Source: Octopus sinensis (taxonomy: Eukaryota). Taken from it: a DNA stretch of 64,000 nt. The stretch covers positions 57,474,001-57,538,000 of the forward strand of contig NC_043013.1 in NCBI RefSeq assembly GCF_006345805.1. The letters run 5' to 3'. The stretch's first letter is position 1; each line of letters starts with the position of its first letter. A program made the position numbers and the translations under genes. Positions 8,814-44,236 of this stretch are shown here, one piece after another. Below the pieces are notes generated by a model. The model was not told the DNA's origin. It was given only the letters and a program-made list of their open reading frames with translations, and ran no database searches.

Positions 8814-11800
8814 AAAATTATGCTTGTAACCGAAATCCTGAGATTGGCATTTAAAATGTTAAAGCTTAGTTTTTGTCGCAACAAAAAGATGATTTTCCTT
8901 GTAGATTTCAAATTTGAGAGGGTTACACTGAAAATAAATATATTTCTCAGTACCGAGTCGCTTCTGTTTTCAATTCGTCATTTAAACAAATATTTGTTTC
9001 TGTTTTAGGAACATATTTTAAAAATATGTACTTTTACATGTTGTCTGTTTTAATGCCGTCAAAACTGTTCACACCACAGTAAATCAAAAATACAAATTAA
9101 ACATTTATTTTTCAAGAAAACCATTTTTTTATATGTCATCATCTTATTTATTGTAGCAAGTAATTTCCGTTTCACTGTTAGGATGTAAAATTTATAATTT
9201 AAAAAAGAATTATATGCTAAGTTTTTTATATTATTTTGTTTCAACATCGTTTATTAAGATTTTTCTGGTATATTTTAGTTATCTCTTATCATTTAAGTTA
9301 GAAAATTGTCGAATTGGTTCACATGGCATTGCTCATTTTTCGCTCCTTCCCCAAATGAATATAAACAAAATTCCTCAATATTACAGAAATTAATTGGAAT
9401 ATGGTTATATTGCTTCAAACGATCGTTGAGTTAGGTGAAAATATCTCATAATATGAAGTTATTATGCTATAAAATTTAAAAGTGCACTTTACACGAAATT
9501 TCCCGGAAGCATATGTGTATAATAATATATTGATATGCTTTAATTACAAATAGCGAAGGAGGCATTTGAATGGCACCATACTTTAGATAAGGTACAAAAA
9601 TACAGCTAAACATGATTTTTGACTCATTGCTTTACAGAAGACATCAAATCGAATAGGTTAATGTGGAAATCATTTATATTTGAAGACACACTATTACTAT
9701 TCTCAGTTGATATATTTCTCCTTTAGGCTGATAGAGATATTTTAAGTCAGTTGCTCTCAGTAATAAAACTATTTTGCCGGATGGACGAAATAGTGAAAGG
9801 TTTTGAAAACCAGTTGTGCATGATGTCCCACATCAAAATGTGTTTAACATGCAGCATGAGAAGTCACTTACGTGATGTAAGAAGGCTTTATTGATGACCG
9901 ATGTGAGCTTGTTAAAGAAAAGTAAATCCACGAGAGAGATATTTTCGGTAAATGCCATTGAAAAGAGAAAGGTATTAAAATATTACTTTGGAAATAAAAA
10001 TCTTTTCAGCAGTATGATACATGAGAGGTTTGAAAAATGGTCAGGTAATACACATGCAAAGGAAATAATTTATTTGCAAATTCACATGGTATCATCATCA
10101 CATTGTCGTTGAAGGGTTTGTTAAGCAACAGTCTCCAGTTTAGCAGCAGTTTTGTTGATAACAATATCAAAATTCCTACTTTATACACTACATTACTCTG
10201 CGAGTTACAGAGTCTCAAAATTTAAAAGCAAACTCTTTTCTGCAGAGGGTCGTTGCCTGTCACAAGAAAAGTTTGTTTTAAATGCTTCTGCAAGCTCTAC
10301 GATACTGCTATAGAAATTTTACATATAAATCAGGATGGCAAACAAGGAAAAGACATTGACTTCATTTGTGGAGACGTAACTGAATGAATTTGTATTTTTG
10401 AAACTTTCATGAGTTACTGGAAATACTGGAAAGAATGCTATAAAAATAAAATCAAACTGCAGTAGCACAACTTTGGCAGAAGAAGATATCGTCAGTTTTC
10501 GTCTATTGAAAACATCTTATAATTATTTAAAGACGATAACCTCAGAACGTTCGTCTGTGCACACGTTCTAAAACCACGTGATATATATTTCTATCCCAGT
10601 GAACGTCTTCAACTATATTCAAAGATTCGCATATGACATGTGAGCAAACTTTTAACAGAAGCCGTTTCCAATCGTATTTTTGTATATCCTGAAATATACT
10701 GCCCAGTCTTTAGCAGTTATGTCTAGCAGGGTGAGCGGTGACATTGACGTCTCCCTCAAATGTGTCATTCACACTGGGAAACACGACCGTAGTTCATTGT
10801 CTCCCTCTTGAGACAATTAAGCACAATCAAATTATTGGATCTGCCGTGCTACCATAGGAGAAAATAGGAAAGAGAAAGTAATTTGACATGGAAATATCAG
10901 CCAATATTTTAGAGAGAAAGACAGCTGCTGCTTCTTTAAAGAAAAATATATGAAAAAATTTCTGGCATGGCATTTTTGTACAGTTACTAAGTTTATATAT
11001 CACTAATCTATGACATACAAAGCTGTATAGTTACATTTATTGCACTCATAGACTCGCTGCGTGTGTGCTTGTGTGTGTCTGTGTGTGCGCGTGGAGTAAC
11101 GATTAACTGTATATATATATAAATATATATATATATACATATATATATGTATATACACGCGAACACACAATTAGTTGTTACTTCTTACACACACGTATAT
11201 GCTACTTATATCAATCATCCGTTTAGCTCCATCTTTGACAGTCCATTTATGTCAAATTTGACATACTGATCACTTTCTTAACTGGAAAACTATATTTTCA
11301 TTTCGTCTATAGAACTTGAAAACATTTTGTAATTTTAAGTAATTCCTAAGCTGCCTCAATGATATATTGGTGGGGGATATTGTTCTGAATGTGCTTTGTG
11401 AACTTGGTACAAACACCGAAGAAGGTAAGTTTTTAAACGCAATTCTTCTCTTCTTATAATATAAGATTATCAGGTAATAATTCGTTTTCGAATCTGTGAA
11501 TACATGTTCAGAGAAAATAAAAAGAAGTAAAAATGAATCTAAGTCAAATGATGTACCGAAGTAACCTCAAGCTGCTTTTGCTAATATTTACTTAATACTT
11601 CTTTCAGAATAAAAGAATCACAATCTCAAAAACTGCGAGAGGAAACACGAAGTAAGATTATAAAAAGCTGGTGCATTGATTCCCTGCCTCAGTCTTATAA
11701 AGGTGACAGTCATTGACTCATATTAAATTAAGTCTCATGCTTTGAGTCCGCAATTCTTGAGTCTTCTTGTGGCCATCACAACAATATACGGTCAACAGAC

Positions 11801-12185: not shown

Positions 12186-12326
12186 GTTGAATGAATTATC
12201 TTATTATGGATAATTCGGTTAACCGATACCTGGGTAGCAAATTCACGTCAGAAAAACACGGTTGAAGCTACATGCCTAGGGCAGAGATCACGTGCTATCG
12301 TGTGGGAATTTGTGTGTTTTTTTTAA

Positions 12327-12900: not shown

Positions 12901-13235
12901 TTATCAGACAAAATGTCTTTACATTACATATACATTAATAGCGAATTAAAACTTGAAGGAGTATGTGAGAGACTTTGCAAATGAAAATGGAATACTCTGC
13001 AGTGAACGCAATGAATAATTAAATTTGTGATGAACTGGACGCAGTAAATATTTAAATTTACAAGAAATTGGAGTTAAAAAATTCAATAAACTTGAGAGAT
13101 CGATATGATAAGAAACTTTCTTAGAATATAAACTTATAAAAATATTTGCAGAGGTCAACCCTTTAATGATTGCTTTCTTTTAGTACTTTTAGTAATTGTT
13201 ACATACCTAATTAATAAGCAGCTTTCTCCATTAAC

Positions 13236-14936: not shown

Positions 14937-15118
14937 AGGACTGAAATTTGTGGGGAGGGGCGCAGTCGATCACATTCACTCCAGTGCTTCACTGGTACTT
15001 AATTTATTGATCTCGAAAGGATAAAAGGAAAAGTCCACCTCGGTGGAATTTGAGCTCAGTACCGTAAGACGAAACAGAGATAGGTATTTCGTCCAGCGTG
15101 CTACCAATTCTGCCAGCC
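14937..15118 (-). mobile_element. tRNA-derived SINE, monomeric form (family targeted by the Tx1)
   Basis: Minus strand CTGGCAGAATTGGTAGCACGCTGGACGAAATACC..GAGCTCAAATTCCACCGAGGTGGACTTTTCCTTTTATCCTTTCGAGATCAATAAATTAAGTACCAGT aligns with 22141-22497 and 42324-42535. Confidence 0.8.
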
Positions 15119-15616
15119 CGAACCCGTATAGGCTTTAGTAATAATAGTCACATAAATATTCAAGGAGAAAAACAAGTAAACCATCTCCTATAAGTAATTC
15201 TTCTGAGCAAGAATCAAAATAATAGTTTAGTTTTCTATCTGAAGAATTACAGACAGGACATGTATACCTGCGTCACTCCTATTAATAATGTAACATATGT
15301 AATGCGGATTAAATAAAACATTTTTCCATTTTTCTCTTTATTTATGTGTATGTACGTAATGTATGTCAGTATATATGTATGTCGGCATGCTTGTCTGCAG
15401 GATTCGTTTTTAATTCGAAGTAGGTACAGCTATAAAAGCGTGGAAATATTGGGTTAAGAAACCCTTTAAATAGAAAAAAAAAACATGTCGAAGACTATTA
15501 CTCACAGATTTATGTTTCGAGTTCCATTGCTGTAATCTAAATATTACACGTCTCTCAAACTTTCTAAATTCTTATGGCATAAAAGATCTATAAGTACACC
15601 TGTGTGTGTGTTGTGC

Positions 15617-16672: not shown

Positions 16673-16673
<1 letters not shown>
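16230..16673 (-). mobile_element. Interspersed repeat, probable LINE 3' UTR with (AAT)n tail
   Basis: Ends on the minus strand in CACTGCTCTCTCACTCAATAATAATAA. Recognised from memory as a common octopus repeat; no coding motifs seen. Confidence 0.4.
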
Positions 16674-16707
<34 letters not shown>

Positions 16708-16734
16708 CATTATTATTATTATTATTATCAAATG

Positions 16735-16800
16735 AAAGCGGCGAGCTGGCAGAAACTTTAGCACGCTGGGCGAAATGCGTAGCCGTATTTCGTCTGTCGC
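16735..16800 (+). mobile_element. 5' half of tRNA-derived SINE head (A box), interrupted by the Tx1 LINE
   Basis: GCGGCGAGCTGGCAGAAACTTTAGCACGCTGGGCGAAATGCGTAGCCGTATTTCGTCTGTCGC matches the head of the intact copy at 44180-44236 (minus). The SINE sequence resumes at 22141. Confidence 0.9.
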
Positions 16801-16936
16801 ACATGTGTTCGTGAAGTAAGAATTGCTGTTTCGTGGTGTTAATATTGTTAACAACTGTTGTTTCTTGTTAAACTGTTGAATAACTTAACTGTTGGAGTTT
16901 TCAATTGAAAACACTTAGTGCTTGTGGTAGCACGCG

Positions 16937-18112
16937 TTGTTCATTCCCCCTTTGGGGGGAAGAATGTCGTCTAGCATGGAGCCTACCGTTGGAGCAGAAA
17001 TACTTGTTTCTCCTGTTGAGAGGAGGAAATACATGTCCGGCGAGGAGCCAAATACAGACAAGGAAATAGGGGTTTCCCCCGCTACAAGAAGGAATAGCAG
17101 ACAGGATAATATATTTGATATTTTTGGAGATGTGTCTGAGAGCTCGTCAGAACTTTCACCAGAAGAGTTTCCGACTCTGCCAAAGAACAAAGGCATTGTG
17201 TCGAAGAGAATAATTGATGTGCCTAGCATCCAGATAGAACCAAAAAATGGAAAAAAAAGTTTTGCGTTGGCTGCTGGGGGTGGAACCCAGATACTGTCGA
17301 CGAATAAAAGCGAAATTATGAAATACAGCAAAATGATGGAAATAAATGACAACGGTGTGAAAATTGAACCTCCGCAAAAGTTATTACAGGAAGAAAAGCA
17401 AAAAAGCAATAATTTTCAAAACATATTGTCTACAAAAAGAAAAATTGAAAGAATGTCAGAAGAGAAAATAGAAAAGTGCTTAAAGCCAATATTGGGCGAC
17501 GTAGTATTTCTGAGAAGAGGAAAAAAATTCGGAACGGTGGAAGTAAGGTTCACAAATAAAGAAATAGCACACAAGAACTCAGTTGAAACGTTGAAAACGA
17601 ACGACGTGGAGTTAATCCCTATTATATGGGGATGAGGACGTCGCGAATAAAAATTACAAGGGTCCCGCCAGAGGTCGAACCTATGTGGTTGTTGGCGGCA
17701 GTCCTAATCAAAGAGGTAGAAAAAATTACTCTCCTCCAGGCTACCGCTACGGAAAACCCACTGGGATGGTAAAACAATTAATCTTCTCATTCAAGCGGAC
17801 CCTAAAATAATTCAAACAATTCCTGAGACAATTGAGGTAGGGGAGGAGAACCTCGTGGTGTTTGTTGAGGGCCGAAAACCTCGATGTTTTTTATGTGGTC
17901 AATTAGGCCACATTCGAAGGAACTGCAAGGAAAATGAAGAAGAGGAGGAAGAGGAGAAAAAAGACAAAGAGGAAGAAGATAAAGAAGAAACAGATGAGAA
18001 AAAAAACAACAAACAAAAGAAAAATACAACCAGCAACCCAGCCGAGAGCGGCGACTACTACAGAACAACGACCAAAAAAGACTGCCAGAAGAGAAAGAAG
18101 AAAAAAGCATAA
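16937..18112 (+). pseudogene. Tx1 ORF1 (gag-like nucleic-acid-binding protein), frameshifted
   Basis: ORF 16937-17635 continues after a frameshift (MRTSRIKITRVPPEV..) into 17855-18112, which has CFLCGQLGHIRRNC (CX2CX4HX4C) followed by an acidic/basic tail. Confidence 0.8.
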
Positions 18113-18495
18113 TAGCCGTATACACTAAAGATACTGAGCTCATGAGAGACATTCAACTCATAAAGACTGTAAAAAAATTGATAACCTTTCAGAGGAATTT
18201 ATCAATTACGACATATATGAAGTCTCAAATAAGACTTATAGAATTCTACAAAATAAGTACAGAAAGACTGTATCTTCATTGAGATTAGATTTTAACAAGT
18301 CATATTTCATGATTACCAGCCCGATCCCGCGAGAAAAGGAAAAGGTGGAGATTCCCCCTCCACCTGATAATTCTGTGTCGGTGGTGAGACGGGATTTTGA
18401 CAAATCTATTTCCCAAGACCGTCCACCTCCGACCCTGGATCAAAAAAGGTGGAGGGTCCCCCTCCACCGGACAATCCTAATTAAACAGGTAAGTG

Positions 18496-21400
18496 ATGGC
18501 TATTCACATTGGTTGTTTAAATGTTCATGGCCTGTTGTCAAGCTGGAAGCAAGGACGCTTTCTGAATGACATCAGGTCGAGAAATTTGGATGTAATTGTT
18601 GCAACGGAAACCCGGGTGAAGGGGCCAAGAGATCTGCTCCCCTCCTGAACGGCTACGAGAAATACGTTTCTCCTGAGGGCGGGAGGTGGGGGTGGGGTGT
18701 TGGTCCTACTAAAAAGAAACCGGGTAGCCGAGAAAAAGTTGGTTTTTTCTGACCAGAAGGCAGGCTGGTCGTTCTCGACTTGACATTCAGTTGTGGCAAG
18801 ACAATCAGGCTGGTCGCTATTTATGCACCAAACATTATTGGCCCGCAAACTGAATATTTTCGTGGCCTAGGAAAGTTCCTAGCCACGTCGCATTCACTAG
18901 TAGTGTTAGGAGACTCTAATACAATATGTGCAGCACACACAGATTGTGTTGGCTCAAACTCGAACATGAACAGAAAATGTAACCCAGGCTTTCGGGATCT
19001 GCTAAGTCAATTTCAGCTAGCAGATCCATATAGGTTGGAGCACCCGAACACTCCACAGTGGACGTGGTCAAATAGTGACGGGTCTACCAGAACATATCTA
19101 GATAGGATTTTAATTAGAGAAAAAGATAAGTCCATAGTTGAGTGTCCACAGTTTTTTCTAGTCAGCTACAGTGACCACAAGATGGTTACCTGTAAACTGA
19201 CGGTAGATAAGTTGCATAGACAGGGATCTGGCTACTGGAACTCAATACGTCACTTTGGCGATTGAGGAGTACAGAAAGCGGATCAAGATGTTAATACAGA
19301 GGGCATTAACAGGTACCATCATTAATAACAAATGGTGGTACGCCCTAAAAAGAGCCATCAAATATGAGTCTATTAGGTTTAGCATAAGTTTAGCTAAGAA
19401 GGGACGTAAAATAGGAGATGGTCTAGCTAAGGAACTAGAAGAAGCCTGGAGGACTGGTAATACAGACCAAGCGAGGGTGAAAAGACTGGAGTTAAACCAG
19501 CATCTTGAAGCCCACCACATGGGAAGTATTACCAGAGGTAAGTTACGTGCAATGGGAAGTGAAGGAATCAAAGCCGCTGGATGGGCCCGAGTGGTGGAAG
19601 CTCGGCAAGGAAATAGTTCCTCTATTCGGTCTTTGACGAATCAAAATGGTGTATTGATAAACGAACCCGAGAAAATGTGTGAGGTCTTTCGGGAGTACTT
19701 CGCCCAGCTGTTCGGGGGTGACGGCGGTCCTGGTGGTGGGAGAGCCCTCGAGGACTTTCTTACCGGGCTGCCGTGCCTCTCGGGGTCGGATGCGGAGTCT
19801 TGCGAAGGGCCAATCACACCTGAGGAGGTGATGGAGGCTTTGGCCGATTGTAAAGCGGGTAAGTCACCGGGACTTGATGGTCTTCCGTACGAGCTGTATA
19901 AATGTATGCCAGACTTGTTCGGGCAACTACTGACTGACGTGTACGCGAACTGGAAACAGAATGGGTTTATCCCCAGATCTGTGCGCGGGCAGTAGTGACG
20001 TTGGTCAGAAAGGACCCGGACAAGGGGGACGTTCTAGAGAATTTCAGGCCCATCACTCTGTTAAACGCAGAAGTGAAGATTTTGGCCAAGGTTCTAGCAA
20101 AAAGGTTGGCGCGTGTCGCGAATGGTATAGTCGGGGAGGCACAGACATGTGCCATCCCAGGCAGAACCATTCAGGATACCCTCCATCTTATTCGCTATAC
20201 CATAGAGAGGTTTGGTAATAAATCTGGCAAAGGTGGGGCATTGGTGCATTTGGACCAGTCTAAAGCTTTTGATAGGGTTGACCATCGATACCTCGCGACT
20301 GTACTTGCGCGGTTTGGCCTGGGCCTTGGCTTCCTCAGGTGGTTTATCGCTTTGTACCACAACATTGACTGGATAGTTCGGGTGAACGGTTTCCTTTCGA
20401 AGCCGTTCTGCATCAGACGCTCGGTTCGTCAAGGATGTCCGCTTTCACCACTTTTGTATGTGATGGCTCTCGAGCCATTACTGCAAAATTGAGTGGCATC
20501 CCGAGAGAACCAGGACTAGAGGAGTTTGTTACGGCTTTCGCGGATGATATCACTATAGTGTAACCACGGGGCACGCCTACGTGAAGTAGGTAAGACTATT
20601 GAGGCTTACGAGGAGGTAGCAGGAGCAAAGATTAACCGGGAAAAGTCGGTCGGCTTGCAGCTCGGCACCTGGGTTAGCAAGTCGATGCCTTCAGACAGTG
20701 TTGTTAGGCGCTGGACGGAGGGACCGGTTAAGTTGCTGGGAGTCTGGTTTGGACCAGGCCTCCAGATAGAGAAGAACTGGACGGAGGTATTGAGCAGGGT
20801 GGCTGCAGTAGTCAAGACCTGGTCTTGGCGGTGGCTATCCCTGAAAGGGAGGGCGGAAGTGGCCAATGTGTTTATCGCATCGGTCATTACCTACCGCCTG
20901 ACCGTCGTGCGCTGTCCGGATTCATGGTTGATCAGGTTGGAGAGACAGCTCTTTCGCTTTTTGTGGAAGGGCAGGTCGCCACTTGTGAAACGCTCTGTCT
21001 GCTGTCAAAAGCCTTTAAATGGAGGTTTAGGGATGCCTTGGTTAATGATGCGCAGACATGCGTTGAGGTTGAGGCACCTCTGGATTCTCCTGGATAGTGA
21101 ACGGGTGTGGTCTCCGCTGGCCAGACAAATGTTCCCTGAGTTCAAGAGTTTTTGCGAACAGGAAGCCTGGTGTTCTCGTAGACCGAGGTCGAGTGAGTGG
21201 CATAAAGAGTGCCGTAAGGCCCTCTTGCTGTTCCGGTGCTCGGGCAACGCCAGCGGTGGGGGTTCTACACGGATTTTATATAGTGGGTTGGTAGAGTCTG
21301 AATGCGACGATGGCCTGGGGTCGACTCTATGTCTCGGATTTATTCAACTGGACAGCTTGTTTCATCGTACATTCGGGTTGAGAACGTTGGACAACTTCCA

Positions 21401-21890
21401 AAAGTCCTTAACCTGGCAATGCTACAGAGGTGCCTTGCCCGTTTGGGATAAGCTCGCAAGACATGGTAAACGTCAGTCGCCGACCTGTCCAAGATGCGGG
21501 GGGGGGGACAGGGAAACCGTCCCTCACGCTATTGTTCAGTGTCCGGAGATAACTGAAATGTGGGCTTATGCTGAACATCTGTTGTCCGGCGAAGGAAGAG
21601 TACGGCTGTCGACTGAGTCAATTATAAAAATTGACCCACCGGGAGTTCTAACGAACGAAGGTAAGAATTGTTTTCTCACGGTTGTAGCAATAGCAAAAGA
21701 GGCAGAATGGAAGACTAGGATAAAAGGAATTAAGACAGGCAACTTTATCTCTGGTGACAATTTACGATCCTTTTTTTCTTTTCATTTGAAAAGGAAACTG
21801 TGGCTGGAGAAGAGGTGTCTGTCAGAGTGTACGTTCCAAAAGAGATGGAAGTATGTTGCACGAGTGTTGTGCGTGCAAGGAACCGTGTGA
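18496..21890 (+). pseudogene. Tx1 ORF2 (APE endonuclease, reverse transcriptase, C-terminal CCHC), several frameshifts
   Basis: APE: MAIHIGCLNVHG, ATETR, IYAPN, LGDSN, YLDRI, SDHK. RT: KSPGLDGLPYE, NFRPITLLN, DQSKAFDRVDH, RQGCPLSP, FADDI, INREKS. Tx1/L1-like: WSWRWLSLKGRAEVAN, GGLGMP, CPRCGGGDRETVPHAIVQC. Confidence 0.92.
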
Positions 21891-22140
21891 ATAGACGAGG
21901 AAAAAAAAAAAAAAAGGAAAAATAAAAAGGTATCAGCGGTAGATCGGGGCTTGTGGGATCGGAGCGTAACTTGATCATCGCTTCATTTGTATTGTTTTTG
22001 TACTGTGTATTCCATTCGATTTTTATGTATTGTATTTTATTTTTGATGTCACATTTATGTAAAATCATATCGATTCACTGATCCCATCAGTTGTACTGTC
22101 CATATCTATGTTTGGCCCCCGGTGGGCAATAAAGAAATTC

Positions 22141-22497
22141 GTATTTCGTCTTCCGTTACGTTCTGGGTTCAAATTCCGCCGATGCCGACTTTGCCTTTCG
22201 TCCTTTTGGGGTCGATAAATTAAGTACCAGTTACGCACTGGGGTCGATGTAATTGACTTAATCCGTTTGTCTGTCCTTGGTTGTCCCCTCTATGTTTAGC
22301 CCCTTGTGGGTAGTAAAGAAATAGGTATTTCTTCTGTTATTATATTCTGTGTTCAAATTCCGCCGAGGTCGATTTTGCCTTTCATCCTTTCGGGGTCGAT
22401 AAATTAATTACCAGTTGAGTACTGGTGTCGATGTAATCGACTCATTCTCTGTCCCAAAATTGCGGCCCTTGTGGCAAAATTTGAAACCATTATTATT
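22141..22497 (+). mobile_element. Composite SINE body: 184-bp unit with Tx1-like tail (22141-22324) plus resumed host SINE body and (ATT)n tail (22325-22497)
   Basis: Two tandem copies of GTATTTC..GTTCAAATTCCGCCGA(G/T)G..GGGGTCGATAAATTAA..ACCAGT separated by a tail that matches the LINE 3' end at 34 of 44 positions. Confidence 0.88.
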
Positions 22498-42323: not shown

Positions 42324-42535
42324 AGGCGGTGAGGTGGCGGGGTCGTTAACATGCCGGATACGATGGTCGGAATCACTTCGTCCGTCTTGACCACCTGAGT
42401 TCAAATTTTACCGAGGTCGACTTTGGTTCACATACCTTAGGGGTCAATAAAATAAGCGCCAGTTGAGCACTGGGGTTGATGTTCTCGACTTACCCCATTC
42501 TTCCAAATTCTTCCAGATGTTCAGAAATTAAAATC
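42324..42535 (+). mobile_element. tRNA-derived SINE, diverged monomer (family targeted by the Tx1)
   Basis: AGGCGGTGAGGTGGC..GAGTTCAAATTTTACCGAGGTCGACTTTGG..GGGGTCAATAAAATAAGCGCCAGTTGAGCACTGGGG. Confidence 0.8.
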
Positions 42536-43843: not shown

Positions 43844-44236
43844 AATAATCCTTTCTACTATAGACACAAGGCCTGAAATTCTGAGGGAGCGGACTAATCG
43901 ATTACGTCGACTCCAGTGTTTCACTGGTACTTAATTTATCGACCTGAAACGATGAAACGCAAATGCACCTCGGCGGAATTTGAACACAGAATATAATAAC
44001 AGACGAAATACCTATTTCTTTACTACCCACAAGGGGCTAAACACAGAGGGTACAAACAAGGACAGACAAATGGATTAAGTTGATTATATCAACCCAAGTG
44101 CGTAACTGGTACTTATGTAATCGACCCCGAAAGGATGAAAGGCAAAGTTAACCTCGGCGGAATTCGAACTCAGAACGTTGCGGCAGACGAAATACGGCTA
44201 CGCATTTCGCCCAGTGTGCTAACGATTCTGCCAGCT
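43844..44236 (-). mobile_element. Composite (dimeric) SINE with internal Tx1-like tail, no LINE
   Basis: Head 44236-44196, 184-bp unit 44195-44012 ending TGTACCCTCTGTGTTTAGCCCCTTGTGGGTAGTAAAGAAATAG, then GTATTTCGTC restarts the host body 44011-43844. Confidence 0.9.

Follow-up and report, generated by a model that had tools for sequence, protein, structure and literature searches.

A candidate target-specific L1/Tx1-type LINE in the head of its partner SINE in octopus genomes

In a stretch of 64,000 nucleotides of the Octopus sinensis genome (contig NC_043013.1, positions 57,474,001 to 57,538,000; hereafter the window, to which coordinates without a locus label refer), a full-length long interspersed element (LINE) of 5,345 bp (16796..22140, + strand) lies within the head of a short interspersed element (SINE), and the locus raises the question whether this nesting reflects a fortuitous insertion or integration at a preferred site. 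Comparison of the window with other octopus loci points to the latter: with a probability of about 0.85, in our estimate, the element is a young L1/Tx1-type LINE with an apurinic/apyrimidinic endonuclease (APE), and its integration, through target-primed reverse transcription, is strongly specific for the motif GTATTTCGTCT (positions 42-52) in the head of an abundant octopus SINE and keeps to the orientation of the SINE in every case. The analysis covered 185,451 bases of octopus DNA, of which the SINE family makes up 2.7%; the LINE copies compared are three of the same family (n=3; the window and the Octopus vulgaris loci L010 and L011) and two relatives (n=2; loci L012 and L013), a small sample.

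The split SINE and its empty site

The host SINE begins directly downstream of an (ATT)n microsatellite (16673..16729, read from the sequence), which belongs to the flank only and not to the element. Its head (16738..16795, + strand; SINE positions about 1-52), which aligns with the heads of LINE-free SINEs, ends in the upstream copy of an 11-bp target-site duplication, GTATTTCGTCT (16785..16795, +; SINE positions 42-52), and the downstream copy (22141..22151, +) follows the last base of the LINE; the 5' side reads GGCGAGCTGGCAGAAACTTTAGCACGCTGGGCGAAATGCGTAGCC GTATTTCGTCT and then the LINE start, the 3' side the LINE end and then GTATTTCGTCT TCCGTTACGTTCTGGGTTCAAATTCC. The rest of the first SINE unit (22152..22324, +) comprises a B-box-like motif, body1 and a LINE-like tail1 ending in AAAGAAATAG, and is followed by a second unit (22325..22497, +), which starts from SINE position 42 (GTATTTCTTCT) and consists of body2, tail2 and (ATT)3. 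The LINE separates the A-box-like motif of the SINE (~16758-16770) from its B-box-like motif (22165-22177). A LINE-free paralogue of the same dimeric SINE family (44236..43844, - strand; dimer junction 44012/44011) is uninterrupted: it reads GCGTAGCCGTATTTCGTCTGCCGCAACG, carries the motif only once (44195..44185) and represents the empty site. An earlier note on this DNA had described a LINE splitting a SINE with one motif on both sides, and the 11-bp duplication, together with the empty site, establishes that this arrangement is real.

The SINE head had also been called tRNA-derived. The box-like motifs, about 45 nt apart in the SINE (A-box-like TAGCACGC(C/T)GGG; B-box-like GAGTTCAAATTCC), are indeed present, but no tRNA is called in the window by ARAGORN, and Rfam returns no tRNA match to two SINE copies at E values up to 10; the part of the description that stands is that of the motifs, and the tRNA origin finds no backing from either program. 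Two older copies of the SINE family (14964-15120, - strand, and 42395-42492, + strand; 76-81% identity) are found in the window, one with a degenerate target motif (CTCTGTTTCGTCT) and the other without a matching head.

Independent insertions at one bond and their rival explanations

The window contains a single copy of the LINE, and the other copies were reached through protein homology. The search with the product of open reading frame 1 (ORF1), the only one to reach copies of the same family, led to annotated O. vulgaris gene models at 95-97% identity; since L010 and L011 were picked in this way, their selection is blind to the flanking DNA. Searches with the C-terminal region and with the ORF2 protein gave only relatives at no more than 62% identity, and the contigs obtained from them (L003-L005, L008, L009) were too short or came from non-octopod hosts, L008 being without the SINE. 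Two metagenome scans yielded no usable copy, with 0 matches to the exact LINE-tail pattern in one and 68 matches to a protein pattern in the other, 0 of which were confirmed; the 2 matches obtained in a scan of viral contigs are taken as chance.

Both O. vulgaris copies are full length and lie on different chromosomes (L010:9113-14465, in OX597815.1; L011:14961-20233, in OX597817.1). They occupy the identical SINE position in the same orientation, being preceded by GCGTAGCCGTATTTCGTCT and followed, at the 3' side, by the junction AATAAAGAAATTC/GTATTTCGT, and they have the same ends as the window copy, which starts with GTCGCACATGTG and ends with GGGCAATAAAGAAATTC. In 3/3 copies of the family the 3' junction is AATAAAGAAATTC/GTATTTCGT and the 5' junction is GCCGTATTTCGTCT/G(T/C)CGCACATG.

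The surroundings of these junctions are different in each case. When the 3 kb to either side are compared, no two of the window, L010 and L011 share a stretch of homologous flank reaching 80 bp outside the SINE itself; the outer duplications around the SINE and its LINE differ (ATATATCATGAATG in L011, TATCATAAAATAA in L010), and so does the build of the host SINE, which is a monomer in L011, a body1+body1 dimer with a 12-bp deletion adjoining the junction in L010, and a body1+body2 dimer in the window, the latter type (body2 unit, CTGGG variant) also occurring LINE-free as copy B. At position +1 of the junction, the window host has T and the L011 host G. In terms of substitutions, the three LINEs diverge by 0.34-0.80% (0.79-0.80% between the window copy and those of L010 and L011) and their host SINEs by 4.6-7.8%, that is 6-14 times as much: 10-17 differences are counted in the hosts against the 0.7-1.8 expected at the LINE rate (Poisson P 7e-9 to 5e-12), and the LINE-bearing hosts are no closer to one another than to LINE-free SINE copies. 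About 7 of the approximately 12 private changes of the window host are non-CpG (a hand count from the alignment), which is still above the LINE rate. Old and diverged hosts with near-identical LINEs indicate three separate insertions of a young element, each into an old SINE copy and all at one bond; the LINE copies, which lie 0.2-0.6% from their own consensus, are, as judged from this divergence, young. The divergence contrast, the differing host architectures and the differing outer duplications are what is expected of independent insertions by a target-specific non-LTR (long terminal repeat) retrotransposon.

Under random insertion, the probability of hitting one given bond in one given orientation is about 6e-5 per event, and that of two extra events at the same bond and in the same orientation about 3e-9. 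Target-specific families have been defined operationally by the presence of one kind of sequence in >20% of flanks (PMC4494074); here the SINE site flanks 3/3 copies, an outcome with a probability of 0.008 if the true share were 20%, albeit in a small sample. The same junctions are encountered in relatives of the family. In Octopus bimaculoides (L012, CM046601.1), a LINE 81% identical to that of the window has the 3' junction GGGCAATAAAGAAATTG/GTATTTCGTCTGTCTATTCG (LINE end AAAGAAATTG followed by GTATTTCGTCT) in a host SINE from a different subfamily (tail2 type). The L013 locus of O. vulgaris holds a LINE of a second family (ORF1 49% identical, first 83 residues of ORF2 about 75% identical) that starts directly after a SINE head ending in GCTTAGCGGTATTTCGTCT (GCGGTATTTCGTCT), which is the same 5' junction. 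Counting L012 for the 3' side and L013 for the 5' side along with the three copies, 4/4 LINE 3' junctions and 4/4 5' junctions fall at the SINE site. The central proposal of the earlier note, namely targeting of a single site in an abundant SINE by the LINE family, is supported by the identical junctions of 3/3 copies at unrelated loci and by those shared with relatives, and the contrary outcome which it had envisaged, LINE 3' ends mostly followed by unrelated sequence, was not seen in any copy reached.

A number of observations weigh against this reading. The L012 copy is 5'-truncated near LINE nucleotide 722 with no SINE head upstream, an outcome not expected from simple insertion; the sequence upstream of the truncated end, a region with N gaps and other repeats, was inspected for a SINE head and for an outer duplication, and neither was found. 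Relatives farther removed (L001, L014 and L003) do not lie in SINEs: in O. sinensis, L001 joins AAAGAAATT/GGATGTTC in non-SINE DNA, and L014 (CM016867.1; L014:4510-21353) holds a family with an ORF2 71% identical at the protein level, arranged as a head-to-tail array joined AATAATAAAACAG/ATTATTTGATG, in which a complete copy precedes at least three internally deleted ones that recur every ~3.57 kb, the 3' end of each unit abutting the 5' end of the next (GGGTAATAATAAAACAG/ATTATTTGATGAAG) without an intervening SINE; the relative on the metagenome contig L003 ends in (ATT)n. From the position of these relatives outside SINEs it follows that specificity for the SINE site would belong to one sub-lineage. 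Finally, 5 SINE copies with a LINE-like tail are inserted at ordinary AT-rich sites (ATAT, ATGT, GTAT) with normal duplications, so that either the machinery moving the SINE has a strong but non-absolute site preference or several LINE families move the SINE. As to the structure of L012 (9640-9900 and 11320-14212), an assembly gap lies inside the LINE, whose 5' end adjoins a (GAA)n tract and an older SINE in reverse orientation.

The SINE copies at AT-rich sites, beginning with ATAT, ATGT or GTAT and bearing the same tail, also favour the view that the endonuclease has only a loose nick preference (RTAT, or GTATTT, present once in the SINE), with chance or microhomology doing the rest and the matches to SINEs reflecting their abundance. 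The L001 relative, which joins ...AAATT/GGAT with ATT microhomology, agrees with this view, and so do the single occurrence of GTAT in the SINE (read from the alignment) and the share of SINEs in the O. vulgaris genome, 11.6% (PMC13282606). Site counts render it very unlikely: 185 kb of octopus DNA contain 8,969 RTAT and 238 GTATTT sites against some 13-25 in SINE context, so that an RTAT-only preference would bring 0.14% of events to the SINE site and a GTATTT-only preference (about 25 of the sites being in SINE context) 10.5%, or 1e-4 for 4/4; an expectation of 0.1-10% per event has to be set against 4/4 junctions on either side, with P of 1e-4 or lower. A related explanation, in which an (ATT)n-type tail finds its target by ATT/TATT microhomology, was suggested by L001, L003 and the tails of Argonauta SINEs and proved insufficient after the L010 and L011 junctions and the site counts.

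According to a different explanation, a LINE entered a SINE only once, and the composite unit was then retrotransposed as a whole through the SINE tail, the junctions being inherited. This would account for the outer duplication that each LINE-bearing SINE has of its own, as a transposed composite would, for the full length and identical 5' junctions of all three LINEs, and for L012, which retains the downstream SINE body with no head upstream of its truncated 5' end; moreover, some Tx1 families carry 5' heads derived from small RNAs (PMC4494074). The composite unit, considered because of the outer duplications, was rejected on the contrast between LINE and host divergence: SINE parts beside the LINE which are 6-14 times more diverged than the LINE, and no closer mutually than to LINE-free copies, are not those of a unit that moved together. 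Its standing as a very unlikely alternative is further lowered by the three architectures of the three hosts (that of the window sharing the CTGGG variant and body2 with the LINE-free copy B), by host differences placed directly beside the junction, and by the need for a transcript starting at the first base of the SINE from a promoter whose B box is 5.3 kb off.

Ectopic gene conversion or recombination, copying the LINE from SINE to SINE through flanking homology with no site-specific integration, would likewise produce identical junctions, and repeat homology extends for 52 nt on one side of the LINE and for about 170 nt on the other. It is highly improbable: each copy has the 11-bp duplication which is the signature of staggered nicking, the junction-adjacent host bases are not homogenised (T at +1 in the window, G in L011, the 12-bp deletion in L010), the arms of homology, besides being short, differ by 5-8%, the L012 and L013 relatives lie in other SINE subfamilies, and conversion tracts, in which host bases would be identical near the LINE and different farther off, are not seen. 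That the three loci are copies of one, by segmental duplication or assembly redundancy, as the 99.2-99.7% identity of the LINEs in substitutions might suggest, has a negligible probability, being refuted by flanks in which, outside the SINE, no homologous stretch reaches 80 bp, and by outer duplications, architectures and chromosomes which all differ.

The SINE as passenger and a possible mechanism

The earlier note had counted three junctions with one motif in the window, reading 22324/22325 and 44012/44011 as two further insertions, by a shorter element ending in the 3' sequence of the LINE. Both window SINE copies, however, have the order head, body1, LINE-like tail1 (…TGTTTAGCCCCTTGTGGGTAGTAAAGAAATAG) / GTATTTC(G/T)TCT, body2, tail2 and (ATT)n, and their second units have the derived stretch GTTATTATATTCTGTGTTC in common; it follows from this common architecture and derived stretch that the two positions go back to a single junction in the ancestor of a dimeric SINE family and are not a pair of independent insertions, and that only two independent events at the motif are represented in the window. 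The shorter element is the left monomer of the SINE itself, whose tail matches the 3' end of the LINE. Indeed, the last 48 nt of this monomer align with the LINE 3' end with a score of 26, compared to 8.2 +/- 1.6 for shuffled sequences (0/2000 reach 26). The SINE tails have in common with the LINE a 3' hairpin, GCCC-CCGGT-GGGC (22115..22127, + strand; 4-bp stem, 5-nt loop), followed by AATAAAGAAATTC; across 11 LINE and SINE tails, 95.5% of cells are paired, and one pair is compensatory, being G-C in 6 tails and C-G in 5. Tails with a hairpin in common typically mark a LINE and the non-autonomous SINE that depends on it, a relationship which the sequences suggest here; besides the 3' tail in common with its partner LINE, the SINE has dispersed copies with target-site duplications, those of the monomers being 13-14 bp long and located at unrelated sites.

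A LINE-like SINE tail followed by AG/GTATTTCGTCT and a SINE body occurs in 7 cases in 185 kb, with at least four types of second unit, and these seven joins between a tail and position 42 correspond to dimers plus one trimer. The presence of SINE tails both at SINE heads and at AT-rich sites indicates that the SINE has moved into SINE heads as well as elsewhere. In the multimers of L013 (7520-8045, - strand; 9441-9790; 11308-11795, - strand) and L010 (14466-14815) the joins are always AAAGAAATAG / GTATTTCGTCT, at position 42. In one dimer and the trimer, private variants are common to the units (e.g., TCTAATTTCAAATGCCCTCGGGG in both, L013:9485 and 9669), and some multimers may owe their origin to local duplication as well as to insertion.

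Other SINE copies deserve mention. At L013:1091-1255, a headless SINE of the tail2 type starts exactly at position 42 (GTATTTCGTCT), after microsatellite-rich non-SINE DNA (GCATTTCTATG); either its 5' truncation coincides with the target site to the base, or it is what remains of an insertion since lost. At L011:7650-8003, a SINE monomer carries a palindromic insertion of ~120 bp, resembling a miniature inverted-repeat transposable element (inverted ends GGGCACTGTC...GACAGTGCCC), which sits at about SINE position 145 and not at the LINE target site. In Argonauta hians (L002), monomer SINEs are found at 803-963, 1136-1260, 11620-11759, 12235-12297 and 12913-13075; they have the same body, a related tail (...GGCCCTTGTGGCTAATAGAGAAATCTATT) and varied non-SINE flanks, in which SINE targeting is not evident. 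Their tails indicate that the partnership between the SINE and the LINE tail is older than the split between Octopus and Argonauta.

In the mechanism proposed for site-specific integration, the LINE endonuclease would nick the bottom strand between SINE positions 41 and 42 (5'-...CGAAATAC^GGCTAC-3'), and the reverse transcriptase would prime there on LINE RNA held through its 3' hairpin and AAUAAAGAAAU tail; the top strand would then be cut 11 nt downstream, after TTTCGTCT, giving rise to the 11-bp duplication. Specificity would reside in the APE domain by analogy with Tx1L, whose specificity is attributed to its endonuclease (Christensen et al. 2000, as cited in PMC4494074). The same machinery, acting on the RNA of the partner SINE, would produce the dimeric and trimeric SINEs whose units meet precisely at position 42. 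Each LINE insertion places the A-box-like and B-box-like motifs 5.3 kb apart and probably silences that SINE copy.

The transcript itself could contribute to target choice. The only AATAAA of the LINE lies 12 nt from its end, so that transcripts probably run into the downstream SINE, and pairing of the SINE-derived transcript end with the nicked target could make integration more specific, in the manner of the ribosomal DNA-specific elements R1 and R2. A stronger version of this idea may be put forward only tentatively, and we consider it rather doubtful: the LINE would home to its own non-autonomous partner by recognition that is partly RNA-guided, the 3' end of the transcript, GUAUUUCGUCU, annealing to nicked SINE heads. 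Since every source copy lies inside a SINE and the AATAAA is near the LINE end, GUAUUUCGUCU would be part of the 3' end of the transcripts; annealing together with a modest nick preference for RTAT would then suffice, in a system that would be self-reinforcing and, in principle, re-aimable. The bottom strand of the target (CGAAATAC) resembles the LINE 3' end (AGAAATTC or AGAAATAG), and every junction is a GAAAT/ATTTC inverted repeat, an oddity which fits an RNA-guided process.

The element, its significance and known systems

The LINE has a leader of 168 nt before ORF1 (16964..18112, + strand), which is broken by frameshifts in the window copy; in a majority consensus of the three copies it encodes 509 residues and reaches to just before ORF2. 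A CCHC zinc knuckle (~17882-17932; Pfam zf-CCHC, 1.2e-05, above the cut-off) is present, and the part of ORF1 upstream of it, in which an RRM may be suspected from the sequence, has no Pfam match; an ORF1 with an RRM and a CCHC knuckle is the type expected of the Tx1 clade. ORF2 (18496..21890, + strand), delimited through Pfam, translations and alignment with human L1 ORF2p, has the layout of the L1 superfamily, with an N-terminal APE-like endonuclease (~18496-19230), a central reverse transcriptase (RVT_1, ~20025-20486; 8.7e-20) and a C-terminal zinc-binding segment (zf-RVT, ~21402-21563; 2.4e-07), the last two above their Pfam cut-offs; Exo_endo_phos scores 20.6 bits in this frameshifted copy, under the cut-off of 24.5. 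Human L1 ORF2p aligns with ORF2 at 203 bits over residues 5-855, and L1 endonuclease chains match too. The 250-nt 3' untranslated region terminates in GGCCCCCGGTGGGCAATAAAGAAATTC, without a poly(A) or microsatellite tail.

Judging from its reading frames, the window copy is dead, with frameshifts in ORF1, several more in ORF2 and three in-frame stops in ORF2. It has 33 private substitutions and 22 private indels, compared to 9 substitutions each and 3-6 indels in the O. vulgaris copies; about half of its indels adjoin runs of the same base, and the copy may be older or the assembly richer in indel errors, in which case some of the frameshifts are perhaps not real. A protein annotated as 'MAG: zinc-binding domain-containing protein [Herbaspirillum sp.]' (P0004) is 52% identical across the full C-terminal region of the LINE and most likely represents host DNA of cephalopod type binned into a bacterial genome.

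Membership of the Tx1 clade is plausible. The best named relative of ORF2 is the Ciona 'pol-like protein' Q76IK4 (259-267 bits, 27% identity, full-length coverage, against 203 bits for human L1), which reportedly falls in the Tx group (Kojima and Fujiwara 2004). A repeat annotation of O. vulgaris from 2026 lists 13 recently active 'L1-Tx1' families, with 421 insertions of about 5.4 kb on average, and makes no mention of targets for them (PMC13282606); a 2022 paper on octopus LINEs does not mention Tx1, and full-text searches of one library of papers returned no description of a SINE-targeting LINE in cephalopods. The targets of non-LTR retrotransposons given in reviews include tRNA genes, transposons and microsatellites (PMC4640811). 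APE LINEs specific for other transposons are well known, for example Tx1L, which lands in Tx1D, and Tx1-Mar, which lands in a Mariner element along with its SINEU partners, and Tx1-clade families that target other transposons have partner SINEs which share the preference (PMC4494074). What sets the octopus element apart is that it targets the very SINE with which it is partnered.

SINEs would in this way join the DNA transposons, LTR elements, small-RNA genes and microsatellites that serve as landing pads of target-specific APE LINEs, and would do so through a young element, in a genome with a widely discussed expansion of repeats. The parasitism would be two-way, the SINE borrowing the machinery of the LINE and the LINE landing in, and probably silencing, SINE copies, with a possible mechanism for the origin of dimeric and trimeric SINEs as a further outcome. 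By rough extrapolation from 9 intact sites in 185 kb, in a sample biased to SINE-rich loci, the exact site would be present ~1e4-1e5 times per genome. The pair may offer a tractable natural system for the study of sequence-specific integration by an APE-type endonuclease or by annealing of RNA to the target, and repeat annotators should expect LINE-in-SINE nesting to be systematic here rather than random.

Compared to known systems, the domain order of ORF2 (APE, reverse transcriptase, C-terminal cysteine-rich segment) is that of human L1 ORF2p (PDB 8uw3, 8sxt), whereas human L1 nicks a loose TTTT/AA consensus and uses a poly(A) tail, and its ORF1 is of a different type (coiled coil, RRM and C-terminal domain, against the CCHC knuckle of the octopus element). 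R2, R1 and Utopia, non-LTR elements specific for rDNA and U2 (PMC4640811), likewise have precise 3' junctions in a multicopy target, a 'safe haven' whose co-transcription may guide integration; however, R2 and Utopia employ a restriction-like endonuclease, R1 belongs to another APE clade, and their targets are essential host genes rather than a parasite. Tx1L and Tx2L of Xenopus laevis, Keno, Kibi and Koshi, all of the Tx1 clade (cited in PMC4494074), are, like the octopus LINE, sequence-specific APE LINEs inserted in multicopy targets (DNA transposons, U2 genes and microsatellites), the difference being in the class of target, which in octopus is a SINE head. As to the partnership with the SINE, the eel UnaL2 and UnaSINE1, about which Kajikawa and Okada wrote in 2002, are reportedly a stringent pair sharing a 3' stem-loop. 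In octopus, too, the last 48 nt of the SINE, including a short hairpin, match a LINE 3' end devoid of poly(A); unlike stringent pairs of that kind, which have no site specificity, the octopus LINE lands inside its partner. Tx1-Mar and SINEU of crocodilians (Kojima 2015, PMC4494074) resemble the octopus system in that an APE LINE of the L1/Tx1 group prefers a region of a transposable element in a fixed orientation, its partner SINE shares the preference, and LINE and SINE insertions are nested at the target. There, the target is the Mariner DNA transposon, around two regions of which the insertions cluster, and the SINE heads derive from U1/U2 small nuclear RNA (PMC4494074); in octopus, the junction is base-exact in every copy seen, the target is a SINE carrying the 3' tail of the LINE, and target and passenger are one and the same SINE family.

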